From contig NIVC01002634.1 of assembly GCA_002269645.1 (NCBI GenBank), forward strand, positions 5,149-69,148: a stretch of DNA of 64,000 nt, written 5' to 3'. The notes under the pieces are model-generated. The model had not been told where the DNA came from. It saw only the letters and a list, made by a program, of their open reading frames with translations, and ran no database searches. A program made the translations under genes and the position numbers. How positions within the stretch are numbered: position 1 is the first letter of the stretch; every line of letters begins with the position of its first letter. This DNA comes from Macrostomum lignano. Its lineage: Eukaryota. This document shows, piece by piece, positions 17,852 to 43,328 of this stretch.

Positions 17852-19314
17852 ATGGAGTATTCACTTACCTCCGACACGTCCGAGGCTGCTGGAGCACCAA
17901 CCGAGGTTGGCACCGCGGCCCAGCCGGACATTCGCAACACCGGAACCCCCGGTGCCTCTCAATCTGCCGCTGCCGCCGCTCAGGATAATACCGGAGTGGC
18001 TGGACAAGACAGCGGACCTCAGATTTCAAAAAAGAAGGCCCGTAGCATTGCTCGCTACAAAGCCTTTCTCCAGCGCAAAGCGGAGGAACGGAGGAATGCG
18101 AAAGCCGCCCCCCGGCCACCTCTGAGGAGGGTGCCGGTAACTCTGCGAACCCCGCGGAGGAGCCGACATCCGACAAGGGGGTGGACCCCGCGCGCCGGTC
18201 TGATGCGTCAGGTGCCGCCGAAGCTCCTGGTGCGGCTGGCCCCTCCCGTGACCGGACCTCTGCCCGTGTGGAAGCTCCCACGGCCGTGGAGGGATCCAAA
18301 GCGGGGGGCGCTGGCCAAACCACAAAGCCGAAGCGAACCTACGCGGCTATGGCCAAAAGGCAGCCGGCCCTGGTTATCCAAGGCCAGGAGACGCCTCTTA
18401 CGGCCGAACAGCTCGACCTTATCTGGCGCAGGTTGGACTCCCACCTGGTCAAGATGGCCTTGAGCGGCACTACCATTCGAGTCCAAAAGACGAAAGTCGA
18501 GGACCAAGCCCTCTATATCCAGCCCACCGACAGCCAGTCAGGACAGCAGCTCCTCGAGCTGCTGAAAACCTTCGACTGGGGCACGGAGCTGGAGAACCTG
18601 TTCATCTACAGGGAGGACGAGCGACCCCGGACACACCGGCACCGTGCCTGGATCCCGGCTCGCAGCTGCATCACCAAGGCCGACGAGCTGCGTCACCTGC
18701 TAGTGGCTTCCAACCCGGAGCTACCGGCCAACGGTGTCGTAGTTCACGAGACCATCTCCAAGCCAGGCGGAGACGGTTTCACGGCTATTCTTGGACTGTC
18801 GGATAGCTGGATGCTCCGCTACCCGGACATGTCCATCATCTCTGTCGGGCTGTTGCAGATTCAGCTCTTTAGCTTTGAGTCTGACGCCACCCGCCCACCG
18901 CCCCCGGAGAAGCGTAAGCGGGCAGTCGGGGGCTCTGCCGGGCGGAAACGCCCAGGAAAAGAAGCTCCCGGCCGTCACGACCCCTCCGAGGACGTGGACC
19001 CTATCAGAGGGAAAGCCGCGAAAGCTGCAGCAACAGGCGGACGTGGGAAGGGCCGGAAACCCGCCCGGAACACTATCCGCTCTGGTCTGACTCAGCGCGC
19101 GAAACAGCTGCTGGACACCGCCAAGGCCCCCAACCGCAGCCACCACCAGCCCAGTGTCACCACTGCGGCCCCCCGGAAAACCGGGCCGAGAGCGAGAATG
19201 CCGCCCAGGTAGCGACCCGCCCTCGACCATGGAATCCATCCGGGAGGAGCCCATGGAGCTGGAGCCTGGAGCTATCGGCGAGGCAGAAGAGGCAGCTCTC
19301 CTGCACAACTCGCC

Positions 19315-19318
<4 letters not shown>
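17852..19318 (+). pseudogene. ORF1 of family-1 element, apparently with two frameshifts
   Basis: Pieces 17852-about 18115, 18181-19212 and the C-terminal MESIREEPME...LLHNSP* (19229-19318) align with family-3 ORF1 (41820-43328). Confidence 0.7.
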
Positions 19319-23062
<3,744 letters not shown>

Positions 23063-23639
23063 CTGCCCGTGGTCGCCAGGGGTTAGCGAAATGGGCGGCA
23101 ACGCCTCCTCGCTGTTTCCGGACGCACGGAGCCCCCTGCAGCTAAGTCAAGTAAGTCAAGTAAGCAACTCTGCTTCTGGTAGTTCTGAGGGGAATTGTGC
23201 AACTGTGCTTCTGGTAGTTCTGAAAGGAATTGTGCAGCTCTGCTTCTGATAGTTCTGAGGAGTATTGTACACCTCTGCTTCTGGTAGTTCTGAGGGGAAT
23301 TGTGCAACTCTGCTTCTGGTAGTTCTGAGGGGAATTGTGCAACTCTGCTTCTGGTAGTTCTGAGAGGAATTGTGCAACTTTGCTTCTGGTAGTTCTGAGG
23401 GGAATTGTGCAACTCTGCTTCTGGTAGTTCTGAGAGGAATTGTGCAACTTTGCTTCTGTTAGTTCTGAGGGGAATTGTGCAACTCTGCTTCTGGTAGTTC
23501 TGAGAGGAACTGAGCAACTCTGCTTCTGGTAGTTCTGAGGGGAATTGTGGAGCTGGGCTTCTGGTAGTTCTGAGGGGAATTGTGCAACTCTGCTTCTGGT
23601 AGTTCTGAAGAGTTCATTCGTCATTCTCTTCCTGTTCTC

Positions 23640-26532
23640 TTGACCTACTTTGACTTAGCTGCAGGGGGCGTCCGGCGGATGCAGCGGGGAGGCGGAGGAG
23701 ACCGCCCATTCCGCTAGCCCCTGGCGACCAATGACTTCCGATGAAGTGAAGTCGCTCAGGGGGACCCGTCGGTCTCGCCTGCAGCGCGGTCCTCCTCACC
23801 GACGGTGGGGAAGAAATCAGCTCGTCCGGTGTCCCTGAGGTACCGGGCGAGCAGCGGGATGCTCTCGGGCCTGCAAACGTCGGAGAGAACCGGGTTTGGC
23901 CCGAGGTGAGTAAGCCTGGCCCTGGTGAAAACCGGGCAGTGGCAGATAAAATGCTCGGCGTTTTCACTGCCTGAGCGGCAGAAGGGGCACCGCTCCTCGG
24001 GTACTTGGCCCTGAAGGAAACGGTGGCGAGAGAAGCAGCCATGCCCGGAGAGGGCCATGCTAACTGCTCTGAGGTCTCTGCGGTTGAGCCTGAGGAGGGC
24101 TCTACGCAGGAGAGGGGAGGGGCAGGGGACGGCCGCCCGGGATTGCCTACAGTTCCGGGTGTCGTGCCACCTGCGGAGATGCTCGGAGTCAGCCCAGCGC
24201 TTAACGCGGGAGTTGATCACCGAGGCGGGGATGGGGGCTCCCGGGCCCGGCCCCAGCAGCGCGCCGGCGAAGCCAGCCTTGGCCAGCAGGTCGGCGCGCT
24301 CGTTGCCGAGGAAGCCGGCGTGGCCCGGGATCCATCTGAGCTCCACCTGGTTGCCTAGCGCAAGCCCGTTGAGCTGGGTGTTGCAGTCCAGGACGGACCT
24401 GGAGCTGGTGGTGCAGCGGCAGAGGGCCCGAAGGGCTGCTTGGCTGTCAGAGTGAAAAATAAGCTTCCGACCGCTAAGCTGCCTTCGGCGCAGTTCTGCC
24501 GCGCAGGAGCTGATGGCAAGCACCTCTCTCTGAAAAACACTGGAGTTGAGCCCCGTGTGCTGGGAGTAGCTCCACGCCACTTCTCCCTTGAAGAAGACGC
24601 ACGCTCCGAAGCCTGAAAGACCATGCTTCATAGAGCCGTCAGTGTAACAGTGGACTTCAGAATCGCTCCAGCTGTCACTCGCCTCATGTCGAGGCTGAAT
24701 AGTGACCTTATACCTTTGGCTCAGGAGAAGGGTGGCTGGGATCGAGTCCGAGAGGATGTTGAGCCCGCCACATTCTTCTAGAGCCTTGAGGCAGAGGTCA
24801 GAGTGCGGGATAAGCGACCGCTTCTTAAAGGCCCGCACTTTCTTGAAGGCCACCCCAGCATCCAGAAGACGCCGGGTGCTCTTCGCCGCCTCTCCTTTGA
24901 TATAAATATCCAGAGGAGGGGTGCAGAGGAAGGCATTCATGCCTTCAAAAGGAGTAGAGGGTGGAGCGCCCATAGTCATGCGGCAGGCTCTGCCCTGGAT
25001 TTTGTAGAGAGCGTCGAGGTTACTCTTGACGCCCAGACCGCTAGCCCACACGAGGCTGGCGTAACTGATCGAGGGGCGGATGATTGCAGTGTAAATCCAC
25101 CACAGCTTCCTGGGGGTGAGCCCCCAGGTGGTGCCCACGGCGCGCCTGATCTGAGCCAGGACAGCCAGGGCTTTTTTGGCTTTAGTTTGAATGTGCGGAG
25201 TCCAGTTGAGCCTGTGGTCCAGAGTGAGGCCCAGGCAGCGGACCTGCTTCTCCATGGAAATGTTCTTTCCATAGAGGGTGAGGGGCTTAATGGTCCAGAG
25301 CAGTTTGTTGGTAAACATGACCGCTGTGGTTTTCGACTCTGAGAGTCTAAGACCACATTGGTTTGCCCAACGCTCCGCTCGTCCCAGAAAGCCCTGCAGA
25401 AGATCTCTGATGGTGTCAACCGAGGGGCCCGCGCAGATCGCGGTCACGTCATCGGCATAGCCCACCTTGAGAATGGGGTCGTGGAGATCACTGCAAAGCA
25501 GCTCATCCATGACCATGTTCCAGAGAACGGGGGTGAGAACTCCGCCCTGGGGGCCCCCTTTTTGGACAGGCGCCGAAAGAGAGCTGCCGTTCAGGTGGGC
25601 CACAACAGTGCGGTTCCGGATCATGAACATGATCCACCGGACAAGGTGAGGGTGCGTGGCCCTGGATTCCAGGGCTCTGCAAAAGGCCTCGAAGATGACG
25701 TTGTCGAAGGCCCCCTCAATGTCCAGAAAAAGCGAGAGGGCAAAGCCGCTGCCAAGAACGGCCCTCTCCAGGAAGTCAACAATGACATGGAGGGCACTCT
25801 CGGTAGACCTGCCCGCGCGGAAGGCGTGCTGGTTCTGCGAGAGTGGGAAGCGCTTCAGCTCGACTGAAAGTAGGCGCCAGAGCACCAGTCTCTCGAGGAG
25901 CTTGAGGCAGAAAGAAGTGAGGCTGATAGGCCTGAAGGCCTTCACCGATTGGTAGTCGCTCTTTCCAGGCTTGGGGATAAAGACCACCCGGGCCTCTCTC
26001 CACGCAACTGGTACATAGCCCAGTTCCACACAAGCTCGGAGGAGACGACAGAGGAGGTCCAGAAAGCGGTGGTTTTTCGCCGCCTCGTGCAAGAACGCTG
26101 GGTAGATGCCGTCGGGCCCAGGCGCCTTGAACGGGTTAAAGGACCTTGCCGCTCTAATAATGCGGTCTTTGGTGATTATAGACTTTGCTAGGCCTTGCCC
26201 TCCCACTGTGTGGTCAGGCGGGCCCTGCTGAGTCGGAGATTTAGGGAAGAAACTGTTGAGCATTAGCTCCAGAGTCTCTTCAGAGCTCCCTGTGACCGAG
26301 CCGTCAGGTCTCTTTACAACAGAGAGTTTAGAAAAACGGTCATTTGTGAGTGCCTTAACCACGCGGGCTACGGGGCGAGAGCCCTCAAGCCCTTCGCAGT
26401 ATTGGCGCCACTTGGCCGTCTTGGCCCTTCTGACTTGGCCCTTAAACTCGTGGATCGCACGGGTATAGGCCTCTCTGTCAGATGGGTCTTTGGTTTTGAG
26501 CGCTCGCCTTTGGAGGGTCCTGGCTCGGCGCC
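23640..26532 (-). mobile_element. 5'-truncated LOA-like element, family 2, with an uninterrupted RT-RNase H frame
   Basis: 12-bp TSD CTTCCTGTTCTC at 23628-23639 and 26533-26544; same 3' terminus CCCCTGCAGCTAAGTCAA; inserted in the 21-bp satellite. Confidence 0.92.
23756..26362 (-). CDS. RT-RNase H-CCHC portion of family-2 ORF2 (frame appears open up to the truncation near 26530)
   Basis: 868-aa ORF with PQGGVLTP, YADD, YTDGS, WIPGHAG; upstream codons read EFKGQVRRAKTAKWRQYCEG without a stop. Confidence 0.9.
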   Translation of the reverse strand: MVKALTNDRFSKLSVVKRPDGSVTGSSEETLELMLNSFFPKSPTQQGPPDHTVGGQGLAKSIITKDRIIRAARSFNPFKAPGPDGIYPAFLHEAAKNHRFLDLLCRLLRACVELGYVPVAWREARVVFIPKPGKSDYQSVKAFRPISLTSFCLKLLERLVLWRLLSVELKRFPLSQNQHAFRAGRSTESALHVIVDFLERAVLGSGFALSLFLDIEGAFDNVIFEAFCRALESRATHPHLVRWIMFMIRNRTVVAHLNGSSLSAPVQKGGPQGGVLTPVLWNMVMDELLCSDLHDPILKVGYADDVTAICAGPSVDTIRDLLQGFLGRAERWANQCGLRLSESKTTAVMFTNKLLWTIKPLTLYGKNISMEKQVRCLGLTLDHRLNWTPHIQTKAKKALAVLAQIRRAVGTTWGLTPRKLWWIYTAIIRPSISYASLVWASGLGVKSNLDALYKIQGRACRMTMGAPPSTPFEGMNAFLCTPPLDIYIKGEAAKSTRRLLDAGVAFKKVRAFKKRSLIPHSDLCLKALEECGGLNILSDSIPATLLLSQRYKVTIQPRHEASDSWSDSEVHCYTDGSMKHGLSGFGACVFFKGEVAWSYSQHTGLNSSVFQREVLAISSCAAELRRRQLSGRKLIFHSDSQAALRALCRCTTSSRSVLDCNTQLNGLALGNQVELRWIPGHAGFLGNERADLLAKAGFAGALLGPGPGAPIPASVINSRVKRWADSEHLRRWHDTRNCRQSRAAVPCPSPLLRRALLRLNRRDLRAVSMALSGHGCFSRHRFLQGQVPEERCPFCRSGSENAEHFICHCPVFTRARLTHLGPNPVLSDVCRPESIPLLARYLRDTGRADFFPTVGEEDRAAGETDGSP

Positions 26533-29365
26533 CTTCCTGTTCTCAGTCACACTTCCTGTTCTCTGTCACTCCCTTCCTGTTCTCTGTCACTCCCTTCCTG
26601 TTCTCTTTCACTCCCTTCCTGTTCTCTGTCACTTTTTCCTGTTCTCTGTCACTCTTTTCCTGTTCTCTGTCACTCTCTTCCTGTTCTTTGTCACTCCCTT
26701 CCTGTTCTCTGTCACTCTCTTCTTGTTCTCTGTCACTCTTCCTGTTCTCTGTCACTTTTTCCTGTTCTCTGTCACTCTTTTCCTGTTCTCTGTCACTCCC
26801 TTCCTGTTCTCTGTCACTCTCTTCCTGTTCTCTGTCACTCCCTTCCTTTTCTCTGTCACTCTCTTCATGTGCTCTGTCATTCTCTTCCTGTTCTCTGTCG
26901 CTCCCTTCCTGTTCTCTGTCACTCCCTTCCTGTTCTCACTCCCTTCCTGTTCTCTGTCACTCTCTGCCTGTTCGTTCTCTGTCACTCTTTTTCAGTTCTC
27001 TGTCACACTTCCTGTTCTCTGTCACTCTCTTCCTGTTGAATGTTACTTTCTTCCTGTTTAAAGACGGCCTTGTTTTCCTTTTTAGAATGGATTAGAAAAC
27101 AGAAAGGAAGTGACAGAGAACAGGAAGAGAGTGACAAAAAACAGAAAGAGAGTGACAGACAACAGGAAGGGAGTGACAGAGAACAGGAAGAGAGTGACAG
27201 AGAACAGGAAGAGAGTGACAGAGAACAGGAAGGGAGTGACAGAGAACAGAAAGGGAGTGAAAACGTGTGTCACATCTGTCGCTAAGCAGAGATTGTCACA
27301 CATGTGTCACAGTGGCAGCACTAATTTTCCTGTTTATTAACTAAGCAGACTTTTCAAAAGCAACAAAGTTGTTTTCTCTAACTAGCAGAGGTAGCCCAGC
27401 TGAGTGAGGCATTGATGGAATAAAATGGGATTTTTTGTGCCTTGCATTTGTCTGCCGAAATCCTGATTACTTTTAACGAAAGAAAAATTGTTTGGCTCTC
27501 TGCACCTGCACCTGAATAATTGCTGTTATGCTACTCCGCTTGGGATGCCTACACGATGGGGAGAAATCGTTGCTGCGCGTGGCGAAGGAAATAGCGACTG
27601 GTAGTTTTTGTGGAATTGTGCAACTCTGCTTCTGGTAGTTCTGAGGGGAATTGTGCAACTGTGCTTCTGGTAGTTCTGAAAGGAATTGTGCAGCTCTGCT
27701 TCTGATAGTACTGAGGAGTATTGTACACCTCTGCTTCTGGTAGTTCTGAGGGGAATGGTGCAACTCTGCTTCTGGTAGTTCTGAGGGGAATTGTGCAACT
27801 CTGCTTCTGGTAGTTCTGAGAGGAATTGTGCAACTTTGCTTCTGGTAGTTCTGAGGGGAATTGTGCAACTCTGCTTCTGGTAGTTCTGAGAGGAATTGTG
27901 CAACTTTGCTTCTGTTAGTTCTGAGGGGAATTGTGCAACTCTGCTTCTGGTAGTTCTGAGAGGAACTGAGCAACTCTGCTTCTGGTAGTTCTGAGGGGAA
28001 TTGTGGAGCTGGGCTTCTGGTAGTTCTGAGGGGAATTGTGCAACTCTGCTTCTGGTAGTTCTGAAGAGTTCATTCCTCATTCTCTTCCTGTTCTCAGTCA
28101 CACTTCCTGTTCTCTGTCACTCCCTTCCTGTTCTCTGTCACTCCCTTCCTGTTCTCTTTCACTCCCTTCCTGTTCTCTGTCACTTTTTCCTGTTCTCTGT
28201 CACTCTTTTCCTGTTCTCTGTCACTCTCTTCCTGTTCTTTGTCACTCCCTTCCTGTTCTCTGTCACTCTCTTCTTGTTCTCTGTCGCTCTTTCTGTTCTC
28301 TGTCACTTTTTCCTGTTCTCTGTCACTCTTTTCCTGTTCTCTGTCACTCCCTTCCTGTTCTCTGTCACTCTCTTCCTGTTCTCTGTCACTCCCTTCCTTT
28401 TCTCTGTCACTCTCTTCATGTGCTCTGTCATTCTCTTCCTGTTCTCTGTCGCTCCCTTCCTGTTCTCTGTCACTCCCTTCCTTTTCTCACTCCCTTTCTG
28501 TTCTCTGTCACTCTCTTCCTGTTCGTTCTCTGTCACTCTTTTTCAGTTCTCTGTCACACTTCCTGTTCTCTGTCACTCTCTTCCTGTTGAATGTTACTTT
28601 CTTCCTGTTTAAAGACGGCCTTGTTTTCTTTTTTAGAATGGATTAGAAAACAGAAAGGAAGTGACAGAGAACAGGAAGAGAGTGACAGAAAACAGAAATA
28701 GAGTGACAGAGAACAGAAAAAGAGTGACAGAGAACAGGAAGAGAGTGACAGAGAACAGAAAAGGAGCGACAGAGAACAGGAAGAGAGTGACAGAGAACAG
28801 GAAGGGAGTGACAGAGAACGGAAAGGGAGTGACAGAGAAAGGGAAGAGAGTGACAGAGAACAGGAAGGGAGTGACAGAGAACAGGAAGAGAGTGACAGAG
28901 AACAGGAAGAGAGTGACAGAGAACAGGATGGGAGCGACAGAGAACAGGAGGGGAGTGACAGAGAACGGAAAGGAAGCGTCAGAGAACAGGAAAAGAGTGA
29001 CAGAGAACAGGAAGAGAGTGACAGAGAACAGGAAGGGAGTGACAGAGAGCAGGAAGAGAATGACGGAGAATATGAAGAGAGTGACAGAGAACAGGGAGAG
29101 AGTGACAGAGAACAGAAAAAGAGTGACAGAGAACAGGAAGGGAGTGACAGAGAACAAGAAGAGAGTGACAGAGAACAGGAAGAGAGTGACAGAGAACAGG
29201 AAGAGAGTGACAGAGAACAGGAAGGGAGTGACAGAGAGCAGGAAGAGAATGACGGAGAATATGAAGAGAGTGACAGAGAACAGGGAGAGAGTGACAGAGA
29301 ACAGAAAGGGAGCGACAGAGAACAGGAAGGGAGTGACAGAGAACAGGAAGAGAGTGACAGAGATT

Positions 29366-30142
29366 TGCAGTTCAACGTACTAGGCGTCTCGTCAGCAGCA
29401 CCTGCCGGGCTTGGTTGGTTCAGGGAGGGCTGAGTTAGCCTCTCGTAGGCTTGAGGTTGGGCTTTAGTGGGGTCTCAGTCAGACCAGTACAAGCAGATTC
29501 AGTGTACGCAAAGGGCACTTAGTTAGACACTGACGCACACGGGAGCTTAGTGGATTCTCCGCAGATAAGAAGCCTCCTTGACGGAAACAAGGGGAGAGGG
29601 GTCCTATTTATAGCCGGGAGACACCCACGCACAAGACCTCGTGACTCGTTCTATTTTTAGAACTGACGTCACTTGGGGTCTCGGGCAGGGTCTCAGTGCG
29701 CGCAAGACCTCGTGACTCGTTCTATTTTTAGAACTGACGTCACTTGAGGTCTCCGGCCAGAGTACACGCGGCTGTGACTCAGTTGCTATTTTTAGCAACA
29801 TGAGTCACTCCTCTCCTTAGAGAAGGGAGAGGTCCGAAAGCACGTGATTCTCCCGGTAAACAGGGCCAACGAGTGCAGTAAACATGTTTACTGCACTTTA
29901 AGACTCCAAGAACGCAAGATCTGTCATGTGAGCAAAACGGGACGGGAACGAAACAGAAACAGCCTACAGCAGAGAAGCTGAGGGCTGAGAACAGAGACGC
30001 AGAAGGGCAGAACAGGCCAAGGACAGCAACAGACGGACAAGGGGGCGGGAAGCTGACCAGCGGCAGACAGCAACCCAGGGCGAGGGCGAGGGAGACTGCT
30101 GACAAAGGGGCCCGCCAAACACTAAACTAGCGGCTCACTACA
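29366..30142 (-). mobile_element. Solo LTR, 777 bp, no TSD
   Basis: Minus strand TGTAG...CTGCA termini; TATAAATA at 29612-29605; 71-bp tandem duplication, each copy with TGACGTCA (29664, 29735); flanks are two different satellites. Confidence 0.65.
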
Positions 30143-30554
30143 CAATCCTCACTTTGAGTTCCCTAATCCTTACTTTGAGTTCCCTAATCCTTACTTTGAG
30201 TTCCCTAATCCTCACTTTTAGTTCCCTATTCCTCACTTTGAGTTCCCCTAATCCTCACTTTTAGTTCCCTAATCCTCACTTTGAGTTCCCTAATCCTCAC
30301 TTTGAGTTCCCTAATCCTCCCTTTGAGTTCCCTAATCCTCCCTTTTAGTCCTCCTAATCCTCACTTTGAGTTCCCTTATCCCACTTTGAGTTCTCTAATC
30401 CTCAATATGAGTTTCCCAATTCTCACTTTGAGTTTTATAACACTCATTTCGAGTTTAAGAAGCTCAATTCGAATCCCTAAAGTAAATTCTAGTTAAAAAT
30501 TATATTTAAGTACATCTCAGTCCCACACTTGCAGCCTCATCAATTCAGCCTCAC

Positions 30555-30715
30555 TTCAACATCCGTCTCTGCCCGACGTTCTCGGCGCCGCGGCACGGAA
30601 CCCCGCCGGGTCCGGTGACCAGACGAGCCTCCAGGCCCTTCTCGGCTGCCCGGGTCTCAAACTCCACCAGCTCATCAGGACAGAGGTTTCGAAATCCCGG
30701 CATGCAGATGGCGGA
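30555..30715 (-). CDS. lin-28: Lin-28 copy B, second CSD exon
   Basis: Splice sites intact; 2 substitutions versus 9313-9473, both synonymous (CTG>TTG, CTT>CTG). Confidence 0.8.
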
Positions 30716-31588
30716 CTTGATGGAGATTCAAGAGGGTTGCTGTTACATTTGGTGGAACTCAAAGATGTACCAGTGAAATAGCAACCAAAACTACTCAAGA
30801 AAACCACATAGCGACTAAACCTACTGAAAGAAACTCCATTGCAACCAAAACTACTCAAGAAAACCACATAGCGACTAAACCTACTGAAAGAAACTCCATT
30901 GCAACCAAAACTACTCAAGAAAACCACATAGCGACTAAATCTACTGAAAGAAACTCCATTGCAACCAAAACTACTCAAGAAAACCACATAGCGACTAAAC
31001 CTACTGAAAGAAACTCCATTGCAACCAAAACTACTCAAGAAAACCACATAGCGACTAAACCTACTGAAAGAAACTCCATTGCAACCAAAACTACTCAAGA
31101 AAACCACATAGCGACTAAACCTACTGAAAGAAACTCCATTGCAACCAAAACTACTCAAGAAAACCACATAGCGACTAAATCTACTGAAAGAAACTCCATT
31201 GCAACCAAAACTACTCAAGAAAACCACATAGCGACTAAACCTACTGAAAGAAACTCCATTGCAACCAAACCTACTCAAAAAAACCACATAGCGACTAAAC
31301 CTACTGAAAGAAACTCCATTGCAACCAAAACTACTCAAGGAAGCCCCATAGCAACCATACCTAGTCACGGCTCAAGAAAACAACAGCAATCAAACCTAAT
31401 AAAAAACTACTCAAGGAAAGCCATAACAAGAAAAAACCGACTCAAGAAAACCCCATAGCAACCAAACTTTCTCAAACTTTCCCATAGCAATCAAACCTAA
31501 TACAAAAAACTGAAACGCCACGACAACCAAAACTACTCAACGAAACCCCATAGCAACCGAGGGCTACTCAAGCCCCGCCGCAGCACAC

Positions 31589-31719
31589 CTGATGCACGAA
31601 AACATTCCGACCTCGGTCGTCCGGCAGGATGAAGCCGAAGCCTCGAGCGACATCGAACCACTTGACCTTGCCCGGCCGCCTCACGGAATTAAGTATTTGC
31701 GCCGAAAGTTGAAAATCAT
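31589..31719 (-). CDS. lin-28: Lin-28 copy B, first CSD exon
   Basis: Splice sites intact; 3 substitutions versus 10095-10225, all synonymous (GCC>GCG, AGA>CGA, GTC>GTT). Confidence 0.8.
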
Positions 31720-34373
31720 CTACAAAGACGCGAGTGCACAGATCTGTGGCGATTTCAGGCAATAATTTGGTGTAATAAAATCTGTTTTGTCGGCTACAGA
31801 GCACTTACCGAAATTCACCTTAATACTTCCGCTCTTTTGCATTGCTGCTAACAACAGATTATAATTTAGATGCAAAAAACCCGGTTGTTTTCTTATTCTA
31901 AAAAAGAAAACCAGGCCGTCTTTTATAGGCAAGCTGCAGCGCTTAAAGACCAATTACCTCAGAACAATTATCCAGTCGCGCTCAGAAGATAGGATTTTTC
32001 CAAACAAATTCCACACTTAATTATCAGGCTCAAGAATATTTTTTAGCAGAGCTTCACCACCTTAAGAAGCACAGCTGCACAATTCCCATCAGAACTACCA
32101 GAAGCACAGCTGCACAACTCCCCTCAGAACTACCAAAAGCACAGCTGCAAAATTCCCATCAGAACTACCAGAAGCAGAGTTGCACAACTCCCCTCAGAAC
32201 TACCAGAAGCAGAGTTGCACAATTTCCCTCAGAGCTACCAGAAGCAGAGTTGCACAATTTCCCTCAGAGCTACCAGAAGCAGAGTTGCACAATACTCCTC
32301 AGAACTACCAGAAGCAGAGTTGCACAATACTCCTCAGAACTACCAGAAGCAGAGTTGCAGAATTCCCCTCAGAAATATGAAAAGCAGAGTTGCACAATTC
32401 CCCTCAGAACTACCAGAAGCAGAGTTGCACAATTTTCCTCAGAACTACCAGAAGCAGAGTTGCACAATTCTCCTCAGAACTACCAGAAGCACAGCTGCAC
32501 AATTCCCCTCAGAACTACCAGAAGCAGAGCTGCACAATTCCCCTCAGAACTACCAGAAGCAGAGTTGCACAATTCTCCTCAGAAATACCAGAAGCAGAGT
32601 TGCACAATTCTCCTCAGAACTACCAGAAGCAGAGCTGCACAATTCCCCTCAGAACTACCAGAAGCACAGCTGCACAATTCCCCTCAGAACTACCAGAAGC
32701 AGAGCTGCACAATTCCCCTCAGAACTACCAGAAGCAGAATTGCACAATTCCCCTCAGAACTACCAGAAGCAGAATTGCACAATTCCCCTCAGAACTACCA
32801 GAAGCAGAATTGCACAATTCCCCTCAGAACTACCAGAAGCAGAGTTGCACAATTCCCCTCAGAACTACCAGAAGCACAGTTGCACAATTCCCCTCAGAAC
32901 TACCAGAAGCAGAGTTGCACAATTCCACAAAAACTACCAGTCGCTATTTTCCTTCGCCACGCGCAGCAACGATTTCTCCCCATTATGTAGGCATCCCAAG
33001 CGGAGTAGCATAACAGCAATTATCGTATTCAGTGCAATTATTCAGGTGCAGGTGCGGAGAGCCAAACAATTTTTCTTTTGTCAAAAGCAATCAGGATTTC
33101 GGCAGACAAATGCAAGGCACAAAAAATCCCATTTTATTCCATCAATGCCTCACTCAGCTGGGCTACCTCTGCTAGTTAGAGAAAATAACTTTGTTGCTTT
33201 TGCAAAGTCTGCTTAGTTAATAAACAGGAAATTTAGTGCTGCCACTGTGACACATGTGTGACAATCTCTGCTTAGCGACAGATGTGACACACGTTTTCAC
33301 TCCCTTTCTGTTCTCTGTCACTCCCTTCCTGTTCTCTGTCACTCTCTTCCTGTTCTCTGTCACTCCCTTTCTGTTCTCTGTCACTCTCCCTGTTCTCTGT
33401 CACTCCCTTCCTGTTCTCTGTCACTCTCTTCCTGTTCTCTGTCACTCCCTTCCTGTTCTCTGTCACTCTCTTCCTGTTCTCTGTCGCTCCCTTTCTGTTC
33501 TCTGTCACTCTCCCTGTTCTCTGTCACTCCCTTCCTGTTCTCCGTCATTCCCTTCCTGTTCTCTGTCACTCTCTTCCTGTTCTCTGTCACTCCCTTCCTG
33601 TTCTCTGTCACTCCCTTCCTGTTCTCTGTCACTCTCTTCCTGTTCTCTGTCACTCCCTTCCTGTTCTCTGTCACTCTCTTCATGTTCTCTGTCATTCTCT
33701 TCCTGTTCTCTGTCACTCCCTTCCTGTTCTCTGTCGCTCCCTTCCTGTTCTCTGTCACTCCCTTCCTGTTCTCTGTCGCTCCCTTCCTGTTCTCTGTCAC
33801 TCTCTTCCTGTTCTCCGTCATTCCCTTCCTGTTCTCTGTCACTCTCTTCCTGTTCTCTGTCACTCCCTTCCTGTTCTCTGTCACTCCCTTCCTGTTCTCT
33901 GTCACTCTCTTCCTGTTCTCTGTCACTCCCTTCCTGTTCTCTGTCACTCTCTTCATGTTCTCTGTCATTCTCTTCCTGTTCTCTGTCACTCCCTTCCTGT
34001 TCTCTGTCGCTCCCTTCCTGTTCTCTGTCACTCCCTTCCTGTTCTCTGTCGCTCCCTTCCTGTTCTCTGTCACTCCCTTCCTGTTCTCTGTCACTTCCTT
34101 CCTGTTCTCTGTCACTCTCTTCCTGTTCTCTGTCACTCTCTTCCTATTCTCTGACTGTTTTATCCATGCTATCCCATCATGGCTGTTATATTCTATCCAC
34201 CCCTTATCAATTAGTGGCATGGTTTAAGAAAATAAAAGGCGAAAGTCGCAATAGCGAAGAAAGCAATGTTTTTCATCCAGAAACGTCTCAAAATTGGGAC
34301 ATTGCACCATTCAAACTGAGCTAAAGCTAATTATTCATTTTTATTGACTTATTCAATTAGTTCATTCACTATA

Positions 34374-34559: not shown

Positions 34560-34855
34560 CTAGAGAAATCTGTCAGTAAAATATAATTTACGAATACTAC
34601 TTACTAAACTAAGTAATAAGGCCGAATTGAAGGCTCGATTTTTTGCACTAAATAACCAAGCAGCCCTCACCTTCATCATAACTTGAAAGAATAGTTAGGA
34701 ATGCCTTTTGCCTACATCTATTGTTTGACGATAAGCAGATATCATACATGTATTCAGCCTACTAAAAATTTGCGATTAAAACGTTATCAAGGCCAAGAAT
34801 TGTCCCAGACTCACTTCTACGCTCCAGAGTCATTCCAGAGTTGTTACAGGTACAA

Positions 34856-34893
<38 letters not shown>

Positions 34894-35089
34894 GCAACAA
34901 CACCCACCGGACTCTACGTTCGGTCTACAACCTTGTTGTAGCTCCTACTTGGCGCCGCGTTTTTGTCGCGGAGGGGAAACACGCCCAATGGGGGTGTACG
35001 AAGAGCGCCATAACCCGGACACTGCGTCCAGCGAGCGTGATTGTACTGGAAGAGGAGCCCGTATCGGTTTTAACACCGGGGGAGCCAAG

Positions 35090-35158
35090 TATCCGGCCCG
35101 CTACCTCCCCGCTCTTCTGTTGCTCAGGGCCGGCGATGTGGAGACCAACCCGGGGCCT
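35090..35158 (+). other. 2A/StopGo ribosome-skipping peptide YPARYLPALLLLRAGDVETNPG|P
   Basis: Exact D(V/I)ExNPGP (35135-35158) preceded by a Leu-rich helix, upstream of the PHD-like fingers and APE. Confidence 0.88.
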
Positions 35159-37864
35159 GCCAACAGCTGCGGATACGTCAGCTGCGGCCGCCCTCTGCGT
35201 GGCAAGTTCCTCACCTGTGCGAGATGTAACAGCCGCTTCCATCTGCAGAAGGACTGCTCCGGGTTGAGTCGCTGGGCCGCGAACAAGGCCGCGGACGCCC
35301 AGGAATGGCACTGCGCCAATTGCGTGATCAGACCCACCACCCAGACAGACTTGTCGTCCTCTGACCAATCGTCCACCTCTACCTGCCAGCCCACGGAAGA
35401 GCACGCCACCCGCAGGCAAGCCCTGCTCAACCGTATCCGGCAAGAGAAACCTAAATGCAATCATTGTCGGAAACCGATGCGCGTCAGCTCCACCATCGCC
35501 TGCTGCAATGCCTGTGAAGGCTTCTTCCACAACGCCTGCACGCAAGCCTCGCGCGACCAGATCAAAAAAGAAATCAGTCGCGGGCTTTGGAGATGCGGTC
35601 ATTGCACTGAAGCCGCCTGCCTCCAAGGCCCGCCCTCCCCTGAGGACCCTGACCCCACTCCTGCTGGGGGGAGCCACCCGGAAGAGGGGTGGGACTGCAA
35701 GAAACCCGAGCTCAAAATCATTCAATGGAACGCGGACGGGATCAGCAACAAAATGGGGGAGCTTGAGGACCTCGCATCTCGGCTTCAGGCCGACGTTATT
35801 GCGGTTCAAGAGTCGAAGCTCACCTCCTTCAACAAAACCCCCCGCATCCCGGGTTTCAGCACATTCGCAAGGACCGTAGAACCGCCCGCTGCGACCCGAA
35901 CGTAAAAGGCGGCGGCCTGCTCTTCTTTATCCGGCAAGGCATCCCGTTCAATAAACTCCAAGGATGGTCTGGAGGAACCACCGAAGGCTGTAGAATATCG
36001 ATCAGCACCTCGGCCAGACAAAAACTTGTCATCGCCAACATTTACCGCCCCCCCCATCCGGCGCGTGGAAGGCGAAGATCACCGTGAGCACCCCAGTGTC
36101 GATTCCTGGCTCAGATGCTTTCACAGGGAAATCCTGCTTGGTGACCTAGCAGGATGGGTTGGTGATCGGAGCCGAGCTCGGTGAGCGGTTTTCCGCTCAG
36201 AACACACCACACACACTGCCTGGGGCAGCGATCCCAATCAAGGACCTGAAGGTGCAGCACAAGCTCAGTGCCTGGTCGACCGGTGCAACTCCGTGGACTA
36301 CCGCATCCTGAACTCAGGGGAACACACCTGCGTTGACAGGCGCACCGGACGGACTAGTGCCCCCGATCTCACCATCGCTAGCCAATCTGTCGCCGACCTC
36401 TGTAAATGGCAACCGCTCACCGAGCTCGGCTCCGATCACCAACCCATCCTGGTGACCGTCCGGGAATCCCGCGAAACCTCGAAAATCAATGACGGCTCCA
36501 TCAAGAAACAGATTGCCAGGCTCTGCTCGGGCATGCTTAAAGCAGTCAAAGCTGCTATCCCGCTCAAAAAAGTCTCTGCCAAAAACAAGCCATACTGGGA
36601 TGAAGAACTTACCGAAATTCGCGACACTCGGAACCGGCTTAGGGAATCTGGCGCCCATCCTGGCGAGTGGCTCGAAAAAAGTCACGAACTGTCCAAACTC
36701 TGTGCCATTAAGAAAGCCGAATTCTGGAAGGAGTATATCAAGAAAATGTCCGACTCTGCCGACCCAAAACAAGTCTGGAGGACCAATAAGTGCCTCAGCA
36801 ACGGCAAGCAACAAGCTCCTCCCAACGAATCTCTCATTGTTGACGGTCGAGAACTGCGCACCGACAAGAAGAAGGCCAACGCCTTTGGCCGCTATTACCA
36901 AAACATCAGCACTCTGAAACACTCGGCGGCAGACCGCAAGGTCAAAGTGGCCACATCCCGTCGCCTGGCCCAATACTCCACCGACGACGACCTTTACTGC
37001 CGTGACTTCACCCCTGGTGAGCTGGAACGGGCCATTGGCAAACTTGACCCCAGCAAAAAATGCGGTCCCGACGAAATCGAAGCTGCCTTCTTCATCCACC
37101 AGCCGGACTCTTGGATGACGGCCTGGCTGGCCGTCTTCAATCGTTGCTGGCGTACCGGACACTGCCCTGGAGTCTGGAAAAAGGCCGTTATCGTCCCTCT
37201 GCCAAAAGACGGAAAGGACCCCAAAGACCGCGGTAGTTACAGGCCTGTCAGCCTCACCTCCGTCTGCGGGAAGACCCTCGAACGGCTTATCCTCGATCGC
37301 CTCTATCGCTGGCTCGAGCTTCACAACATCATTCAGCCCTGGCAGGCCGGTTTTCAACGCAGTCGCGGCTGTGAAGAGCAAATCGCCCGCCTCGTTCAGT
37401 CTATTCAAGATGGCTGGGAGAAACGCCCGCACCTGAAAACCGTGGCCGTCATCATCGACTGCTCTCGCGCTTTCGACCGTGTTTGGCGCGCTCGCCTTAT
37501 TGGTCGCATGATGGATGAAGGCGTCCCTGCCTGTATGGTGCGTTGGTTCACCAGCTTTCTAGAAGGCAGGCAGATCGCTGTGCGGATCGGCTCCTCGCTT
37601 GGGAAATGGCGCAGACTGAGGGAAGGCGTCCCCCAGGGCGCCGTCAGCTCGCCTGCCCTTTTCCTCCTCTATGTTAACAAGTGGTCCGGCCACACCATGC
37701 CCCTCGTCGACTACAGTGGCTATGCAGACGACCTTGCCCTCTGGAGCACGGGCCGGAACCTCCCGGAAATCCAGGCTCGCCTCCAATCCGCCCTGCAACT
37801 TGTCGAGGAATGGGCCGCTCATCTGCGCATCGACATCAACCCCTCAAAAACTGAGGCATGCCTC

Positions 37865-38220
37865 AGGGGGCCGTAGCCCAGCGGTAGCGCAGCTGCTCTG
37901 GTGTGCCAGCGACCCAGGCTCGATTCCAAGTGCAGTCACATTAATTTGGGACTGAATTGGAATCTCGGCTTGGCTCTGCTCGTGCAATTAACGGCCTTGA
38001 GAGCCAACCGCCCAAGGCGCAGTGAAGTGTACATGACTAAATATAAAGTTAGGGCCGCAGTACACTCCTGTGTGAGTGTGTGCCTGCGTACGTATCCGCG
38101 CGCTTGTATGCCTGCTCAGGGGAGTCGGCGGAATGGGCAGTAATGCCTCTCGCCGGTTGTGTGCCCATGTCGCTTAAAGTGTGCCAGGGTGCACACAACC
38201 CCCCTGCCTCTAAAAAAAAA
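37865..38220 (+). mobile_element. tRNA-headed SINE with a LOA-type 3' structure and A10 tail
   Basis: 12-bp TSD GAGGCATGCCTC (37853-37864, 38221-38232); box A TAGCCCAGCGG 37874-37884; box B GGCTCGATTCC 37917-37927; removing it restores KTEACLFSRD in the Ingi RT frame. Confidence 0.9.
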
Positions 38221-39787
38221 GAGGCATGCCTCTTCTCTCGTGACAGATCTGACCGTCAACGAAACCCCAGCCTTACCCTCCGGGGCCAACAGATTCTTTT
38301 CAAGCAGGAGATTAAGTTTCTCGGAATCTGGATTGACCAAGGTCTGCTATTCGAAAAGCAAACTGACTCCGTCAGGGAGAAAATGTTTCGCCGAGCTGCC
38401 ATTCTCCGTGCCCTAGCCCACCGTGAATGGGGCTGGGATCGCAAGCTACTGCTGCGAGTCTACCGGGCTCTTGTGGAATCCGTCGTGTGCCACGCCGCCG
38501 CGGCTTGGACGCCCTGGCTATCTGCGACCCGTCTCAACGCCATCGACCGTGCCCAGCGCGAGGCCCTCCGGGTTGTCACTGGTCTCCCTCGCTCGACACC
38601 GGTTGAGGCCATCTACTTTGAGTCGGGAATCCTTCCCATCAGCCTCGAAGCCCGCCGAAGATCGCTACTTGCGGTTGAGAAAGCGCTCCGCAGACCCCCC
38701 CCCCCACCCCCGACGACCCCTTCTGGCAGCTTTGCGAGCGCCGCCAGGACACCCGGCTTTCTGCCAACCGTGGCCTCCGCGAACAAGCTAGACGAATCAC
38801 CGATGAGCTCCTTGGCGGACATTGCCTTGCTAACAGCCACATCCGGCTCCCACCCTGGAACTCTTTGGCCGACGCCGGAGTGCGCATGTTCACTAAGCTG
38901 CTGTTCGAGCCACTTGAAACCGACGCCGTCCAGGCGGTCCAAGCCACCACGACCGCGCGCTGCCCGAACGCCGCCACTTACTTCACCGACGGATCCGTCT
39001 CGGGTGGCGTTAAAAACGGAGGCGCGGCCTGGATTCTCTTGAGCCAGGACGGCTCTATCAGCCGGAGCGGGCGAGTGGCCGCGGGCCGCTGGTGCAGCTC
39101 CTTTGAGGCTGAACTCATCGCCATCTTCCAGGCGCTAAGCGACATCACTGCCAACCCCCCGAAAGAGGCTGCCATTCTCACCGACAGCCAGAGCGCCATC
39201 GCGGTTCTAAAATCCGATCGTCCATCCACTAACCCGCTCGTGGAGAGCGTTAAGAATGCCTTTACACCGCCGCCCGTCGTTCGAAGATCATCCTGCAGTG
39301 GGTGCCCGGGCACGCCGGAATCCCCGGAAACGAACTTGTGGATGCCGAGGCCAAACTAGCGGCCACGCTGCCTCAGGAACATGTCGGCATCACCCTGGAT
39401 TCGGCGAGGGCCCGCATCCGAGGGGCTGTTAATTACTCGCCCAACATGACAGGCCACCTGTTTGAGGTCTATGGCCAAAAGATTACGATGCATGAGAGCC
39501 CGCACAGACAACAGGTCCTGGTCTCGCAGGTCAGCCCCAGCAGCTAATCGCCGGGCACTGTCCTGCATCGACCTACTACCGCAACCGCATTAGCATTGAG
39601 GTCGGGGGCAACTGCCGTCTCTGCGCGGAAGAGGTTGATCAGTACCACCTCCTCAACTGCCCGGCCCTGGACGTCCAACGCCGTACTCACTGCATTACCG
39701 AAATGTGTCAACTCGCTCGCTCAGACGCAGTGGCGCTTCTCCTAGGGGCCATCGGTTGGTGTCCCCTTTAGGAGAGGCTCACCGCAT

Positions 39788-39985
39788 TCAACAACAACAA
39801 AAGCAACAACAACAACAACAAAATACGCGACCCAGCATGCACAGTCACAGTTAGAGCAGGGCACGTCAGATGGCGCGCCGCAGAGCCTGGGAGCGAATAA
39901 AGTCCGCTCCGTTGGCAGTGTCGGGCGCCCCAGCGTCGCACAGCAGGCAGTCCACGTATCGGCGGGTTCGGGCCTGACCCCGCCT
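39788..39985 (-). mobile_element. RTE 3' end (RRGQARTRRYVDCLLCDAG...ALRRAI*, 3' UTR, (TTG)n tail), inverted relative to the RTE body
   Basis: Minus-strand translation continues in frame from ...LTLQGPFR at 47376, sharing AGG. Confidence 0.85.
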
Positions 39986-41819
39986 TCTTCGCCGGCATCG
40001 TGAACGCGCCCGCGTCGCCGCTGCCCGCTAGCTTTGCGCTCCCACTGGACACGCCGCTCCCAGCTGAGGAGGATATCTGCACCAGACCAGTCACCACGCA
40101 GGACGTTGTGCTGTACGCGCGGAAAACATCAGGCGGCAAGGCGCTCGGCCCCGACGAAGTCCCGGTCGAAGCGCTGCGGCTCCGCTGTGTGGCCTCCCAG
40201 GTCACAGGCGTCATGAACCGCGTGCCCGCCGGCGCTCCTGCGCCTACCGAGTGGACCGTCGCGCACATCGTGCCGATCCCGATGAAGGCAGGGACAACGC
40301 GGAAAGAAGACCACCGCGGGATCTCGCTGATGTCCTGCACCGCGAAGCTCTTCAACCGGCTGCTGCTCGATCGTCTGCAGTCGGTGCTGGACCCGTACCT
40401 GCGGTACGAGCAGAACGGATTCCGGCCGCAACGCGGTACAGTGACACAGATCCTCGCACTCCGCCGTGTCATCGAGGAGGCGCGCATCCGCCAGTCTACG
40501 CTGATCATTGTCTTCGTTGACTTTCGAAAGGCGTTTGACTCAGTGTTGAGAGCCGCGCTTCCCTTTGTCCTTCGAGCCTAGCGGGTACCCCAGCAGCTAA
40601 TCGACGCTGTCATGGTGCTATATTGCGATACTCGAGCTGCTGTGGTGACGGGGGACGGCCTGTCTGACCTGTTCGATACTTCATCAGGAGTTCTGCACGG
40701 CGACACGCTAGCTCCGTTCCTCTTCGTGCTGCTGCTGGACTGGGTGCTTCGGACCTCACTCCCCACGGCTAATGACGGCTTCCTGCTGCGCAGACGCATC
40801 GATCGCCGCCACGGCGGAAAGCGCCTAGGCGTGCTTGGCTACGCCGACGACCTCGCCCTCCTGTCCTCGTCCGTTGAAGGCGCCCAGCGCCAGATCGACA
40901 GGCTGGTCGAGGTGGCATCGAGCGTCGGTCTGATCGTCAACACGCTGAAGACCGAGGTGCTGACTGTGCCGGCCGACATCCCAGCGGACCTGACGTGCCG
41001 CGGCGCAGAAGGGCAGACGACCAGGCTTGCATGCTGCAAGCGGTTCACCTACCTCGGCGGTCTGGTGCCCCACGTGGAAGAGGACCTCCGGCGGCGCAGA
41101 GGACTTGCCTGGGCGGCCTTTCGTTCGATCCGAGCCGTCCTCCAGTCCGAAGCGCTGCCCGACCGCCAGAGGGCTCGGCTGTGGCAGGCGGTGGTCGAAA
41201 CCGTCCTGCTCTACAACGCCGAGACGTGGACGCTGACGGCTACGCTAGAGCGGTAGCTGGACTCGGCGCACTCAGGGCTGCTCCGAGAGCTGACGAGAGT
41301 GCACGCGAAGGCGTATTCAGCATGCCAGTGAAGTATGAGACAGACCAGGCCTTTGGGCTAAGGTCTGCGATGCTTCACGCCTGCCCCTATCTTTAGCAGG
41401 TCAAGGCTGGTGGGAGGTCTGCACCCTCTATTTGCCTCTGGCAGCCGCAGACCCCCCCCCCACGCTGTCTCGCAAGTCGACCCAGGGTACTCGTCCCCGC
41501 GTGTGTTCAAGGCAGACCCTAGGGCTGCTGGACAGACTGGGCTCCGGCGCTGGCGACCCTATCCAGTGGCTTCGGCCGAATTTGGGTATGCGGGTCTGGC
41601 TCGCCGACCTGCAGGCCGTGGTACTGCTCAACGTACTCTCTAATGCCTAAGGTGTTGACCGTGCCGATGGGCTGGAAGGCCGGGGAGTAGTCCGGTCGCA
41701 AGCGGTCCCCCTCCTGGTGTCGGGCCAGCCTTGAGGGTTCGATTGGCCTACTGCCCGGTCAGGTGGAGCGGCCGGGTGGGTACCGCGCCCCTTTGAGGGT
41801 AGCCCACCAACCTTTTATC

Positions 41820-43328
41820 ATGGCCTTCGAGCCGACTATGGATAAACAAGCTATTTCTAGGGACGGGGACCCTTCTAAACCCCAACCTCAGTCCGAAGGA
41901 CCGGCCGGCCCTGCTGGCAGATCCCAACCGACTGATTCAACTGTGGCAAAGGAAGGACCGGCTGGCTCTGCTGGCAGATCCGACCAGAGCTACCAAACTC
42001 AAAATACCCAAAGACCTGCCAGCTCCGCTGGTGGATCTAAGGGAACCGCGAGCTCTGAGCCTAAAGGACCGGCCAAATCTGGCAGATCCGATGAAGCTCA
42101 GCGGGCTCGGCTTGAGCGCAAACGCGCTAAACAACGCGCCAAAAGGCAGGCCAAGAAGGGAGCTGCGGGGGCCAAAGCGGCGGCGTCCACCATGGATGCT
42201 GAAGCGACTGGAGTCCCAAGGCAACCAGGCGGGCCGGCCGGTGGAAGCTCCAGTAGTTCAGCGGCGGCGCTCCCTGGAGCTGCTGCCGCGGCTGCTGAGG
42301 CCGAAACCACGGCGCAACAAATGGCCACTGCCAACAAGGAGGTTCCTTCGGGAGCTACCTTTGCGGCGAAGGCCAAGGCCAAAATCCCGGGAGTGATCAT
42401 CCAAGGTCGCGACCAGGACTGGACCACTGATCAGCTTCAAAAAGTGTGGAGTGCTGTTGACTCCTATCTGATTGAGCTGACTGTCGAGGAGGGAATCTCC
42501 ATCGGCATTGAGCGGATGGTGCTGCGAAGCACATTCGTTCTTATTGCTCCTAGCAGCGAGGAGGACGCTCGGCGGCTGCTCCAGCGGCTGCCGACGGTCT
42601 CCTTGGATGCTGACCTTGGCGGAGCTCTTTTTCTTCGCGAGGGCCAGCGTCCAAAGACGATACCCTACGTGGTTTTCGTCCCTGCTAAGAGCACCGCAGC
42701 TGGACCACCTGACGTTATCCGCCGGGTCCTACTGCGTCTGAACCCCGACCTCCCTGCTAGTGGACTGGTGTATCACCGCCGAGTCCGCAGGGGGGAGACG
42801 GGCAACTCAATTGTCCTCGGCCTTTCCAGCACTTGGGCGAGTCGGTACCCTAATGGATCCTCTTTCCAGCTGGGTGCCCTCAAGCTCAAGATGCGCCGAG
42901 GAAAGTCTGCCAAAGGGAAGGCTACTGCCAACCCCGGCATCTCCGGCAAGAGCGGGGCGCAGTCTAAGGCCCAAGGAAAGGCGCAAGCCGATCCCAAAGC
43001 CAAAGCTGTGTCTCGCCCCTCTGCTAGCAGCAGTTCGGCAACCGCGGTAACGGCTCCGGCCAAGCCCCGGGAACCAAATCTGCCAGTCGGAGAAGGAGTT
43101 GAGGACGAGGCCGGGTCTTCGGAATCCGAGCTCTCCTCGGCCACCCTGGTGGGGTCTGAAGGTAAAGATGCAGATGAGGAAGCTTCCTCCATCCTGTCGT
43201 CGGAGCCTGAGGACTCTGCTGGGGGGGCCGGTGGGGGTGAGGAGGCCATGGACGTCGACCAACTCCCATCTCCCAGTCAAGCCCCAGCGGCCTGGGACGA
43301 GGACGATCTGTTGTCCAAGTCTCCTTGA
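41820..43328 (+). CDS. ORF1 of family-3 element, open
   Basis: ATG at 41820; low-complexity N-terminus, basic stretch, globular core aligning with family-1 ORF1, acidic tail ending LLSKSP*. Confidence 0.8.
   Translation: MAFEPTMDKQAISRDGDPSKPQPQSEGPAGPAGRSQPTDSTVAKEGPAGSAGRSDQSYQTQNTQRPASSAGGSKGTASSEPKGPAKSGRSDEAQRARLERKRAKQRAKRQAKKGAAGAKAAASTMDAEATGVPRQPGGPAGGSSSSSAAALPGAAAAAAEAETTAQQMATANKEVPSGATFAAKAKAKIPGVIIQGRDQDWTTDQLQKVWSAVDSYLIELTVEEGISIGIERMVLRSTFVLIAPSSEEDARRLLQRLPTVSLDADLGGALFLREGQRPKTIPYVVFVPAKSTAAGPPDVIRRVLLRLNPDLPASGLVYHRRVRRGETGNSIVLGLSSTWASRYPNGSSFQLGALKLKMRRGKSAKGKATANPGISGKSGAQSKAQGKAQADPKAKAVSRPSASSSSATAVTAPAKPREPNLPVGEGVEDEAGSSESELSSATLVGSEGKDADEEASSILSSEPEDSAGGAGGGEEAMDVDQLPSPSQAPAAWDEDDLLSKSP

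Follow-up and report, generated by a model that had tools for sequence, protein, structure and literature searches.

A probable 3'-truncated lin-28 paralogue whose coding differences from its neighbouring copy are all silent

Lin-28, a conserved protein, regulates developmental timing and stem cells, and a locus that carries part of its gene twice raises the question of whether the second copy is a maintained paralogue, a relic, an alternative cassette or an error of assembly. Such a locus lies in a 64,000-nt stretch of Macrostomum lignano DNA (contig NIVC01002634.1 of assembly GCA_002269645.1; hereafter the window), in which two exons that encode a cold-shock domain (CSD) occur twice. The preliminary description of this DNA had called positions 30555 to 31719 a partial lin-28 duplicate with intact splice sites, in which all five exonic differences across 292 coding nt are silent. 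We found the interval to be exact, running on the minus strand from the 3' end of exon 3 to the 5' end of exon 2 of the upstream copy (copy B), and the duplicate to be partial as proposed: the CSD exons are present twice and the zinc-knuckle exon once, and the matches are to the lin-28 family. Judged from its sequence, the second copy is most likely a real and young paralogue of lin-28, truncated at the 3' end, still intact and possibly under constraint.

Copy B sits 21.2 to 21.5 kb upstream of the other copy (copy A) on the same strand, and the lengths of exons 2 and 3 are the same in both (Table 1). Alignment of the two copies showed that 5 of the 292 nt of these exons differ, by two transitions and three transversions, and that every difference is synonymous: in the order A/B, the codon pairs are GCC/GCG (Ala), AGA/CGA (Arg), GTC/GTT (Val), CTT/CTG (Leu) and CTG/TTG (Leu). 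In copy B the silent sites lie at 31601, 31615 and 31700 in exon 2 and at 30559 and 30632 in exon 3; their counterparts in copy A are 10107, 10121 and 10206 in exon 2 and 9317 and 9390 in exon 3. Either exon pair encodes a complete CSD, and the two translations are identical. The splice signals are likewise the same in both copies (a slash marks the splice site), with acceptor ttgtag/AT and donor CAG/gtgtgc for exon 2 and acceptor atcaag/TC and donor AA/gtgagg for exon 3.

The zinc-knuckle exon lies downstream of copy A only and is single-copy within the window; its acceptor completes the AA left by exon 3 to AAG. A tblastn search over the 64 kb returned exons 1, 2 and 3 in two copies each, the knuckle exon in one and nothing else related to lin-28. 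The predicted full-length Lin-28 has 167 aa, whichever copy provides exons 1 to 3. Its N-terminal CSD scored 69 to 71 bits with Pfam PF00313 (cut-off, 27) and keeps the KWF, GFGF and VFVHQ motifs, while the Pfam model for the Lin-28A-like second knuckle (PF21890) gave 26.8 bits against a gathering cut-off of 27. In a PDB search, the full protein matched mouse and human LIN28A best (E=8e-29), collinearly over the CSD and both knuckles, with Y-box proteins well behind (E about 1e-15). The best single-stretch matches in an exhaustive HMMER search of 1.8 billion representatives were arthropod proteins annotated "protein lin-28 homolog" (50 to 56% identity, collinear). Alignment with 11 lin-28 homologues revealed that the zinc ligands (C110, C113, H119 and C124; C133, C136, H141 and C146), the CYNCG tyrosine and the ribonucleoprotein (RNP) motifs of the CSD are invariant, and that the unusual first-knuckle spacing CX2CX5HX4C is common to the window protein and the invertebrate homologues aligned. 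The exon 2/3 boundary falls after VHQ, which we take to be like the boundary in human LIN28A. Because the protein matches LIN28A and arthropod lin-28, and because all zinc ligands and CSD motifs are invariant, copy A with the knuckle exon is, by its sequence, a genuine animal lin-28 homologue and a complete gene. Copy A together with 8311-8488 has the two knuckles of the lin-28 family; copy B alone does not.

When the CSD alone served as the query, a word-indexed search gave no matches other than protist, plant and bacterial cold-shock proteins, at 45 to 56% identity. A generic or protist cold-shock protein was accordingly among the candidates for this locus, and it was dropped after the knuckle exon had been found and the full protein had matched LIN28A and arthropod lin-28. 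A metagenome scan for the lin-28 protein gave nothing beyond CSD relatives at 45 to 48%, and no exact or close copy of the predicted proteins (four isoforms) or of the open reading frames (ORFs) of the window was present in the public collections searched. Rfam and transfer RNA scans of the window found no let-7, no other Rfam family and no transfer RNA.

The duplication extends beyond the interval first described, with about 4 kb copied. The two blocks are direct repeats on the same strand, block A reaching from 8616 to about 12500 and block B from 30144 to 34153, and read on the plus strand both have the order 21-bp array G, exon 3, 60-bp array (in intron 2), exon 2, exon 1, about 220 nt of 5' region, 35-bp array H, spacer and 21-bp array F. 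The candidate start exon, which shows no differences between the copies, and the 5' region of about 220 nt have thus been copied as well. In both copies this candidate exon reads ATGCAAAAGAGCGGAAGTATTAAGGTGAATTTCG/gtaagt and ends in phase 1, the phase that exon 2 needs, with an intron of 89 nt between the two exons; another acceptor 24 nt upstream also preserves the frame. The 55 nt between the TATAAAAG motif and the ATG region of copy B differ from copy A by 3 substitutions and 3 indels. The arrays of A and B have different copy numbers (G, 27 and 14; the 60-bp array, 5.7 and 9.7; the third pair, 21 and 25). The F array of copy A is composite: its first ~860 bp are B-like, its last ~500 to 600 bp are closer to the F arrays of the units that follow, and the parts are joined seamlessly near 12500. 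Near copy B, regular-expression and tblastn searches (E up to 10) found no second zinc-knuckle exon or remnant of one, and 29364-30143 had no match elsewhere in the window. This last stretch holds two copies of a motif of roughly 45 nt (GCAAGACCTCGTGACTCGTTCTATTTTTAGAACTGACGTCACTTG) and a palindromic variant. The exon 3 frame stays open through the 60-bp intronic minisatellite, giving ORFs of 270 aa (30556-31368, minus strand) and 190 aa (9314-9886, minus strand); the open frame reflects periodicity (60 = 3 x 20), and these ORFs are therefore spurious and not coding sequence.

To gauge what five silent differences can say about copy B, we took as neutral yardstick only the non-tandem aligned segments of the gene part. 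Non-coding segments of this kind carry 11 substitutions (8 events) and 7 indels in 707 nt, and the coding sequence carries 5 substitutions and no indel in 326 nt. Two transitions and three transversions placed at random in the coding sequence would all be synonymous with a probability of 0.0008 under drift of both copies. Under the more relevant null, drift of copy B alone with copy A constrained, the probability is 0.008. At the rates of the flanks, a dead copy B would be expected to show about 3.0 to 3.5 amino-acid-changing substitutions or indels, and the probability of seeing none is 0.03 to 0.05. The preliminary description had argued that neutral decay would make most changes nonsynonymous. 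That argument holds well for two drifting copies (P about 0.001) and more weakly for drift of copy B only (0.008, or 0.03 to 0.05 from flank rates). In sum, the pattern suggests constraint on copy B at a P level of about 0.01 to 0.05, which is suggestive and not decisive.

Two other yardsticks were set aside. The spacer between arrays H and F is 6.3% diverged between A and B (32941-33296 and 11312-11644), against 1.5 to 1.6% for the gene part (31364-32064 and 9882-10575), and the synonymous sites (5 of about 88 changed; apparent synonymous divergence, dS, about 6%) are spacer-like rather than intron-like. The spacer was dropped as a yardstick, being a multicopy element whose B version is nearer to the inverted units than to its A partner. 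Whole-block BLAST identity (92 to 95%) was dropped too, as it is dominated by minisatellite units that are out of register.

We then asked what copy B could encode. Its exon 3 ends in ...ATG TTG AA, so that the frame runs AAG TGA if the donor is read through and AAA TGA if the exon is joined to copy A exon 2 (ATGATT...). Either way the predicted protein is the same one of 109 aa, which ends in ...RRMLK and comprises the N-terminus and the CSD without the knuckles. A third route, a splice of 22,066 nt from exon 3 of copy B to 8488 that skips the copy A exons, reads AAG TGC TAC... and would restore the same 167-aa Lin-28. Since the introns of the gene otherwise measure 87 to 873 nt and a sense-oriented long interspersed nuclear element (LINE) lies within the 22-kb interval, this long splice would probably be a minor route.

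The same junctions bear on whether the exon pairs form a mutually exclusive cassette, in which a shared first exon upstream of 34 kb would be joined to one of the two pairs, B or A, and that pair to the zinc-knuckle exon. The pairs agree in length and phase (131 + 161 nt each), and their joint inclusion, by 292 nt that are not a multiple of 3, breaks the frame at AAA TGA; enforcement by reading frame is known in some mutually exclusive exon pairs. However, the pairs encode identical peptides and so would add no protein diversity, a separate candidate ATG exon, whose consensus donor is in the right phase, stands ahead of each pair, a tblastn search of the window found no lin-28-like exon upstream of 34154, and a skip of 22 kb over two good exons stands against the short introns of the rest of the gene. 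The alternative cassette that the preliminary description had offered is therefore very improbable, given identical peptides and a separate candidate start exon (and 5' region) for each copy; serial inclusion, moreover, would run straight into the stop.

In the mechanism that we propose, a segmental duplication would have copied the 5' module of lin-28 (5' region, candidate ATG exon and two CSD exons) upstream, leaving copy B as a 3'-truncated paralogue with its start codon, frame and all four splice sites intact. Transcripts of copy B would retain the intron or splice to exon 2 of copy A and so yield the 109-aa CSD-only protein. Purifying selection on this coding capacity would then have produced the silent-only divergence, which would mean that copy B is expressed and that its product matters. 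That the duplication is real, copy B a 3'-truncated paralogue and purifying selection on an expressed copy the best reading of its silent-only divergence is a proposition that we judge, from the sequence, to be about evenly balanced. The unchanged duplication of the candidate exon 1, with a consensus donor in the right phase, suggests that it is correct, as does the lack of any coding indel in 326 nt next to 7 flank indels in 707 nt.

Several observations weigh against it. The exons are not conserved overall, since their divergence (1.53%) is no lower than that of the flanking non-coding sequence (1.56%; Fisher p=1.0); with densities this alike, the signal lies in where the changes fall and not in a shortage of changes. 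Purifying selection on both copies, one of the two options in the preliminary description, thus has the silent-only pattern in its favor and the level of exon divergence against it. Five synonymous changes also exceed the 1.0 to 1.5 expected from flank divergence (P=0.013; Fisher 0.024; ~4x flanks), and this excess of synonymous change is not explained by selection. The signal amounts to five sites chosen post hoc from a scan. Exon 1, both promoters and the copy B transcript are predictions from the DNA sequence, and the same is true of copy B expression, of selection on copy B and of the duplication being no assembly error, all of which we infer. The TATA-like TATAAAAG motif belongs to a repeated element found at five satellite junctions, so its promoter role is a lead only. 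No canonical poly(A) hexamer was found within 3.2 kb downstream of copy B exon 3, and a transcript in which this exon is joined to copy A exon 2 would meet a premature stop long before its later junctions. Finally, the region is extremely repeat-rich, which favors assembly error.

Some of these points are equally what a young, functionless relic would show. On this account the duplication is real, a divergence of ~1.5% is too recent for damage to have accumulated, and the all-silent pattern reflects luck and post hoc choice. Coding and non-coding divergence are alike, only about 3 to 3.5 disabling events are expected in a dead copy B, so that zero is unusual (P 0.03 to 0.05) and not extreme, and copy B has neither a zinc-knuckle exon nor a nearby poly(A) hexamer; 5'-partial duplicates are commonly nonfunctional. 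Against this, the probability that five given differences are all silent is 0.008, two of the five changes (AGA/CGA and CTG/TTG) are silent at the first codon position, a rare class of site, the exons have no indels compared with 7 in the flanks, and the splice signals and candidate ATG are all intact. We therefore consider a relic possible, though on the unlikely side.

If copy B is instead an expressed paralogue, the anatomy suggests what its product might do. In human LIN28 the CSD provides most of the binding affinity for let-7, and the zinc-knuckle domain is needed to block Dicer and to recruit terminal uridylyltransferase (PMC6511231). A CSD-only product would by analogy be expected to bind RNA targets without effector function, since affinity lies with the CSD and effector activity with the knuckles in the human protein. 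It is a doubtful further step that copy B is expressed and kept by selection as a CSD-only paralogue of Lin-28, competing with or buffering the full-length protein on pre-let-7 and mRNA targets. The suggestion of a CSD-only paralogue in the preliminary description fits the anatomy, with no second knuckle exon and a frame of 109 aa, whereas expression of copy B is predicted from its sequence.

The remaining explanation is that the blocks are two haplotypes or homeologues of one locus that were wrongly joined one after the other within the 21-bp F satellite. Assemblies of heterozygous, repeat-rich genomes commonly contain false heterotype duplications, some of which repeat part of a gene's exons in tandem, and these usually lie where there is a gap or where a contig ends (Rhie et al. 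2021, PMC8081667). If the copies are alleles of a functional gene, differences confined to silent sites are to be expected. Both edges of the blocks lie within minisatellites, the composite F array of copy A could hide one false join near 12500, and a divergence of 1.5% with differences in repeat copy number is within the range of heterozygosity. The LINE reverse transcriptase, moreover, has its nearest named relatives in Macrostomum lignano, a neopolyploid that is hard to assemble (PMC10733133).

Other features of the window do not fit a false join well. There is no N in the 64 kb, whereas false tandem duplications at the scaffold level usually carry a gap, and the copies are not placed end to end, with 17 kb of ordered units and two LINEs between them. 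Downstream of exon 3 the contexts differ within short distances: copy B reaches window-unique sequence after 412 bp, and copy A the zinc-knuckle intron after about 700 bp. Any long read would span these 400 to 700 bp, and a haplotype with exons 1 to 3 in a different context must exist either way. The junction of F with inverted F that follows copy A has the core of the four other units, and gapless satellites on the kilobase scale probably imply long reads that span each 4-kb block. The proposal that alleles or homeologs had been joined by recombination or by the assembler, also made in the preliminary description, is thus helped by the satellite edges and by a divergence in the range of heterozygosity, and disfavored by the missing gap, the structured 17-kb interval and the different flanks. 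We regard an artefact as distinctly unlikely.

Table 1. Coordinates of lin-28 exons and of the repeats that accompany them in the window
Feature	Position	Strand	Remarks
Terminal exon of lin-28, coding part	8311-8488	-	Two CCHC zinc knuckles, CYNCGQVSEHLAANC and CYRCRSVNHLVKDC; stop TGA 8311-8313; acceptor ccccag/G
21-bp minisatellite G (GAGTTCCCTAATCCTCACTTT, about 27 copies), intron 3 of copy A	8616-9191		Proximal edge of block A
Copy A exon 3, second half of CSD, 161 nt	9313-9473	-	Donor AA/gtgagg
60-bp minisatellite, intron 2 of copy A, 5.7 copies	9539-9881
Copy A exon 2, first half of CSD, 131 nt	10095-10225	-	
Copy A candidate exon 1, coding part	10314-10347	-	ATG CAA AAG ... TTC G/gtaagt; predicted exon
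TATAAAAG motif, ~90 nt upstream of copy A ATG	10431-10438	-	Within a motif that is also the core of the satellite foldback units
Copy A upstream part	10576-about 12500		Array H 10576-11311, spacer 11312-11644, B-like part of array F 11645 to about 12500
Five tandem foldback-like units	12507-29363		Each: 21-bp array F, 45-nt core, inverted F, 337-bp spacer, inverted 35-bp array H
780 bp unique in the window, directly downstream (gene sense) of copy B	29364-30143		No zinc-knuckle remnant
21-bp minisatellite G of copy B, about 14 copies	30144-30434		Proximal edge of block B
Copy B exon 3, 161 nt	30555-30715	-	Two silent differences from A
60-bp minisatellite, intron 2 of copy B, 9.7 copies	30781-31363
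Copy B exon 2, 131 nt	31589-31719	-	Three silent differences from A
Copy B candidate exon 1, coding part	31809-31842	-	Identical to copy A; predicted exon
TATAAAAG motif, ~90 nt upstream of copy B ATG	31920-31927	-
Copy B upstream part	32065-34153		Array H 32065-32940, spacer 32941-33296, array F 33297-34153; homology with A stops at 34153

The 17 kb between the copies consist of the foldback units and two LINEs in an ordered arrangement. The spacers of the five units are 99 to 100% identical to one another, 97.3% identical to the copy B spacer and 94.7% identical to the copy A spacer. The core at the junction of F and inverted F (AAAGACGGCCTTGTTTTCTTTTTTAGAAT...) is found at 13103-13137, 15103-15135, 16632-16666, 27059-27093 and 28610-28644, and it recurs reversed, TATAAAAG included, in the lin-28 5' regions at 31876-31930 and 10381-10441. 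Because this TATAAAAG-bearing core recurs at satellite junctions, the candidate lin-28 promoter may be derived from the foldback repeat family. Unit 3 is broken by the two LINEs, one on the plus strand at 18157-22975, near full length with two frameshifts (ORF1, 18157-19167; ORF2, 19369-22975), and one on the minus strand at 23819-26530 that is 5'-truncated. The only named relatives of the LINE reverse transcriptase were Macrostomum lignano entries, at 56 to 63% identity over 11 to 22% of the query, which on its own points only weakly to a flatworm, and the closest relative was a 6.5-kb Logan contig from run ERR14788467 (76% amino-acid identity). Further non-LTR (long terminal repeat) retrotransposons of the APE-RT-RNase H type lie at 42387-47025 and 36293-40953 (both plus strand), with fragments at 49141-53840; those at 36 to 41 kb belong to a second family.

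Downstream of lin-28, and convergent with it, lies a gene for an SNRNP200/Brr2-type helicase, whose last coding exons (1925-2527 and 3746-4312, plus strand) match the Sec63 Brl domain (E=1.7e-49 and 2.5e-19) and a winged helix-turn-helix; the fragment is 66 to 68% identical to its best matches, which does not tell taxa apart. A 45/27-bp minisatellite occupies 2648-3533 in the intron between these exons, and a (TGTC)n microsatellite of 1.2 kb (5615-6803) separates the two convergent genes. A short way upstream of block B and opposite to it in strand, a 354-aa ORF (34841-35905, plus strand) gave a weak PHD-finger match (E=6.6e-5; 23.3 bits, just below the cut-off of 24). The stretch from 54001 to 58000 is AT-rich, with 27 to 35% G+C compared with 44 to 64% in the rest of the window, and is followed by a 28-bp array (58101-59218) and a 34-bp array (61410-62033).

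If copy B is maintained, a CSD-only copy with its own 5' region would be a natural genetic test, in an invertebrate, of the division of labor between CSD and knuckles, and an example of a young partial duplicate acquiring a role. If it is an artefact, the locus is a warning that silent-only divergence of tandem copies is what misplaced alleles of a constrained gene look like. A partial duplicate of a known family is otherwise of modest interest unless a CSD-only Lin-28 is expressed; what is new here is a second copy of the 5' part of lin-28 that lacks the zinc knuckles, with hints that it is perhaps still in use.

Compared with Lin-28, LIN28A and LIN28B, the window protein has the same domain order and spacing, a CSD followed by two CCHC knuckles. 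It differs in being short (167 aa predicted) with a C-terminal tail that is nearly nil, and the locus differs in carrying the three 5' exons twice. The predicted product of copy B, an N-terminal tail with one CSD, resembles the stand-alone CSD proteins of the bacterial CspA type and of protists and plants. Unlike these, it would stem from truncation of lin-28 less than about 2% divergence ago and not from an old cold-shock protein lineage, and its expression is a prediction.

In the UGT1A and clustered protocadherin loci, clusters of alternative first exons share constant 3' exons. The lin-28 locus has a similar geometry, with two upstream modules, each with a candidate start exon and a 5' region, and one shared downstream exon. 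In contrast to those clusters, the lin-28 modules have three exons each and encode identical peptides, and the acceptor of copy A exon 2, intact between copy B exon 3 and the knuckle exon, would capture copy B exon 3 out of frame. False partial tandem exon duplications, such as that of GABRG2 in an earlier zebra finch reference (PMC8081667), likewise present a subset of exons twice in the same orientation in repeat-rich sequence, here at about 98.5% identity. The copies in the window differ from these in lying 17 kb apart, with no gap between them and with flanks that diverge within a few hundred base pairs.

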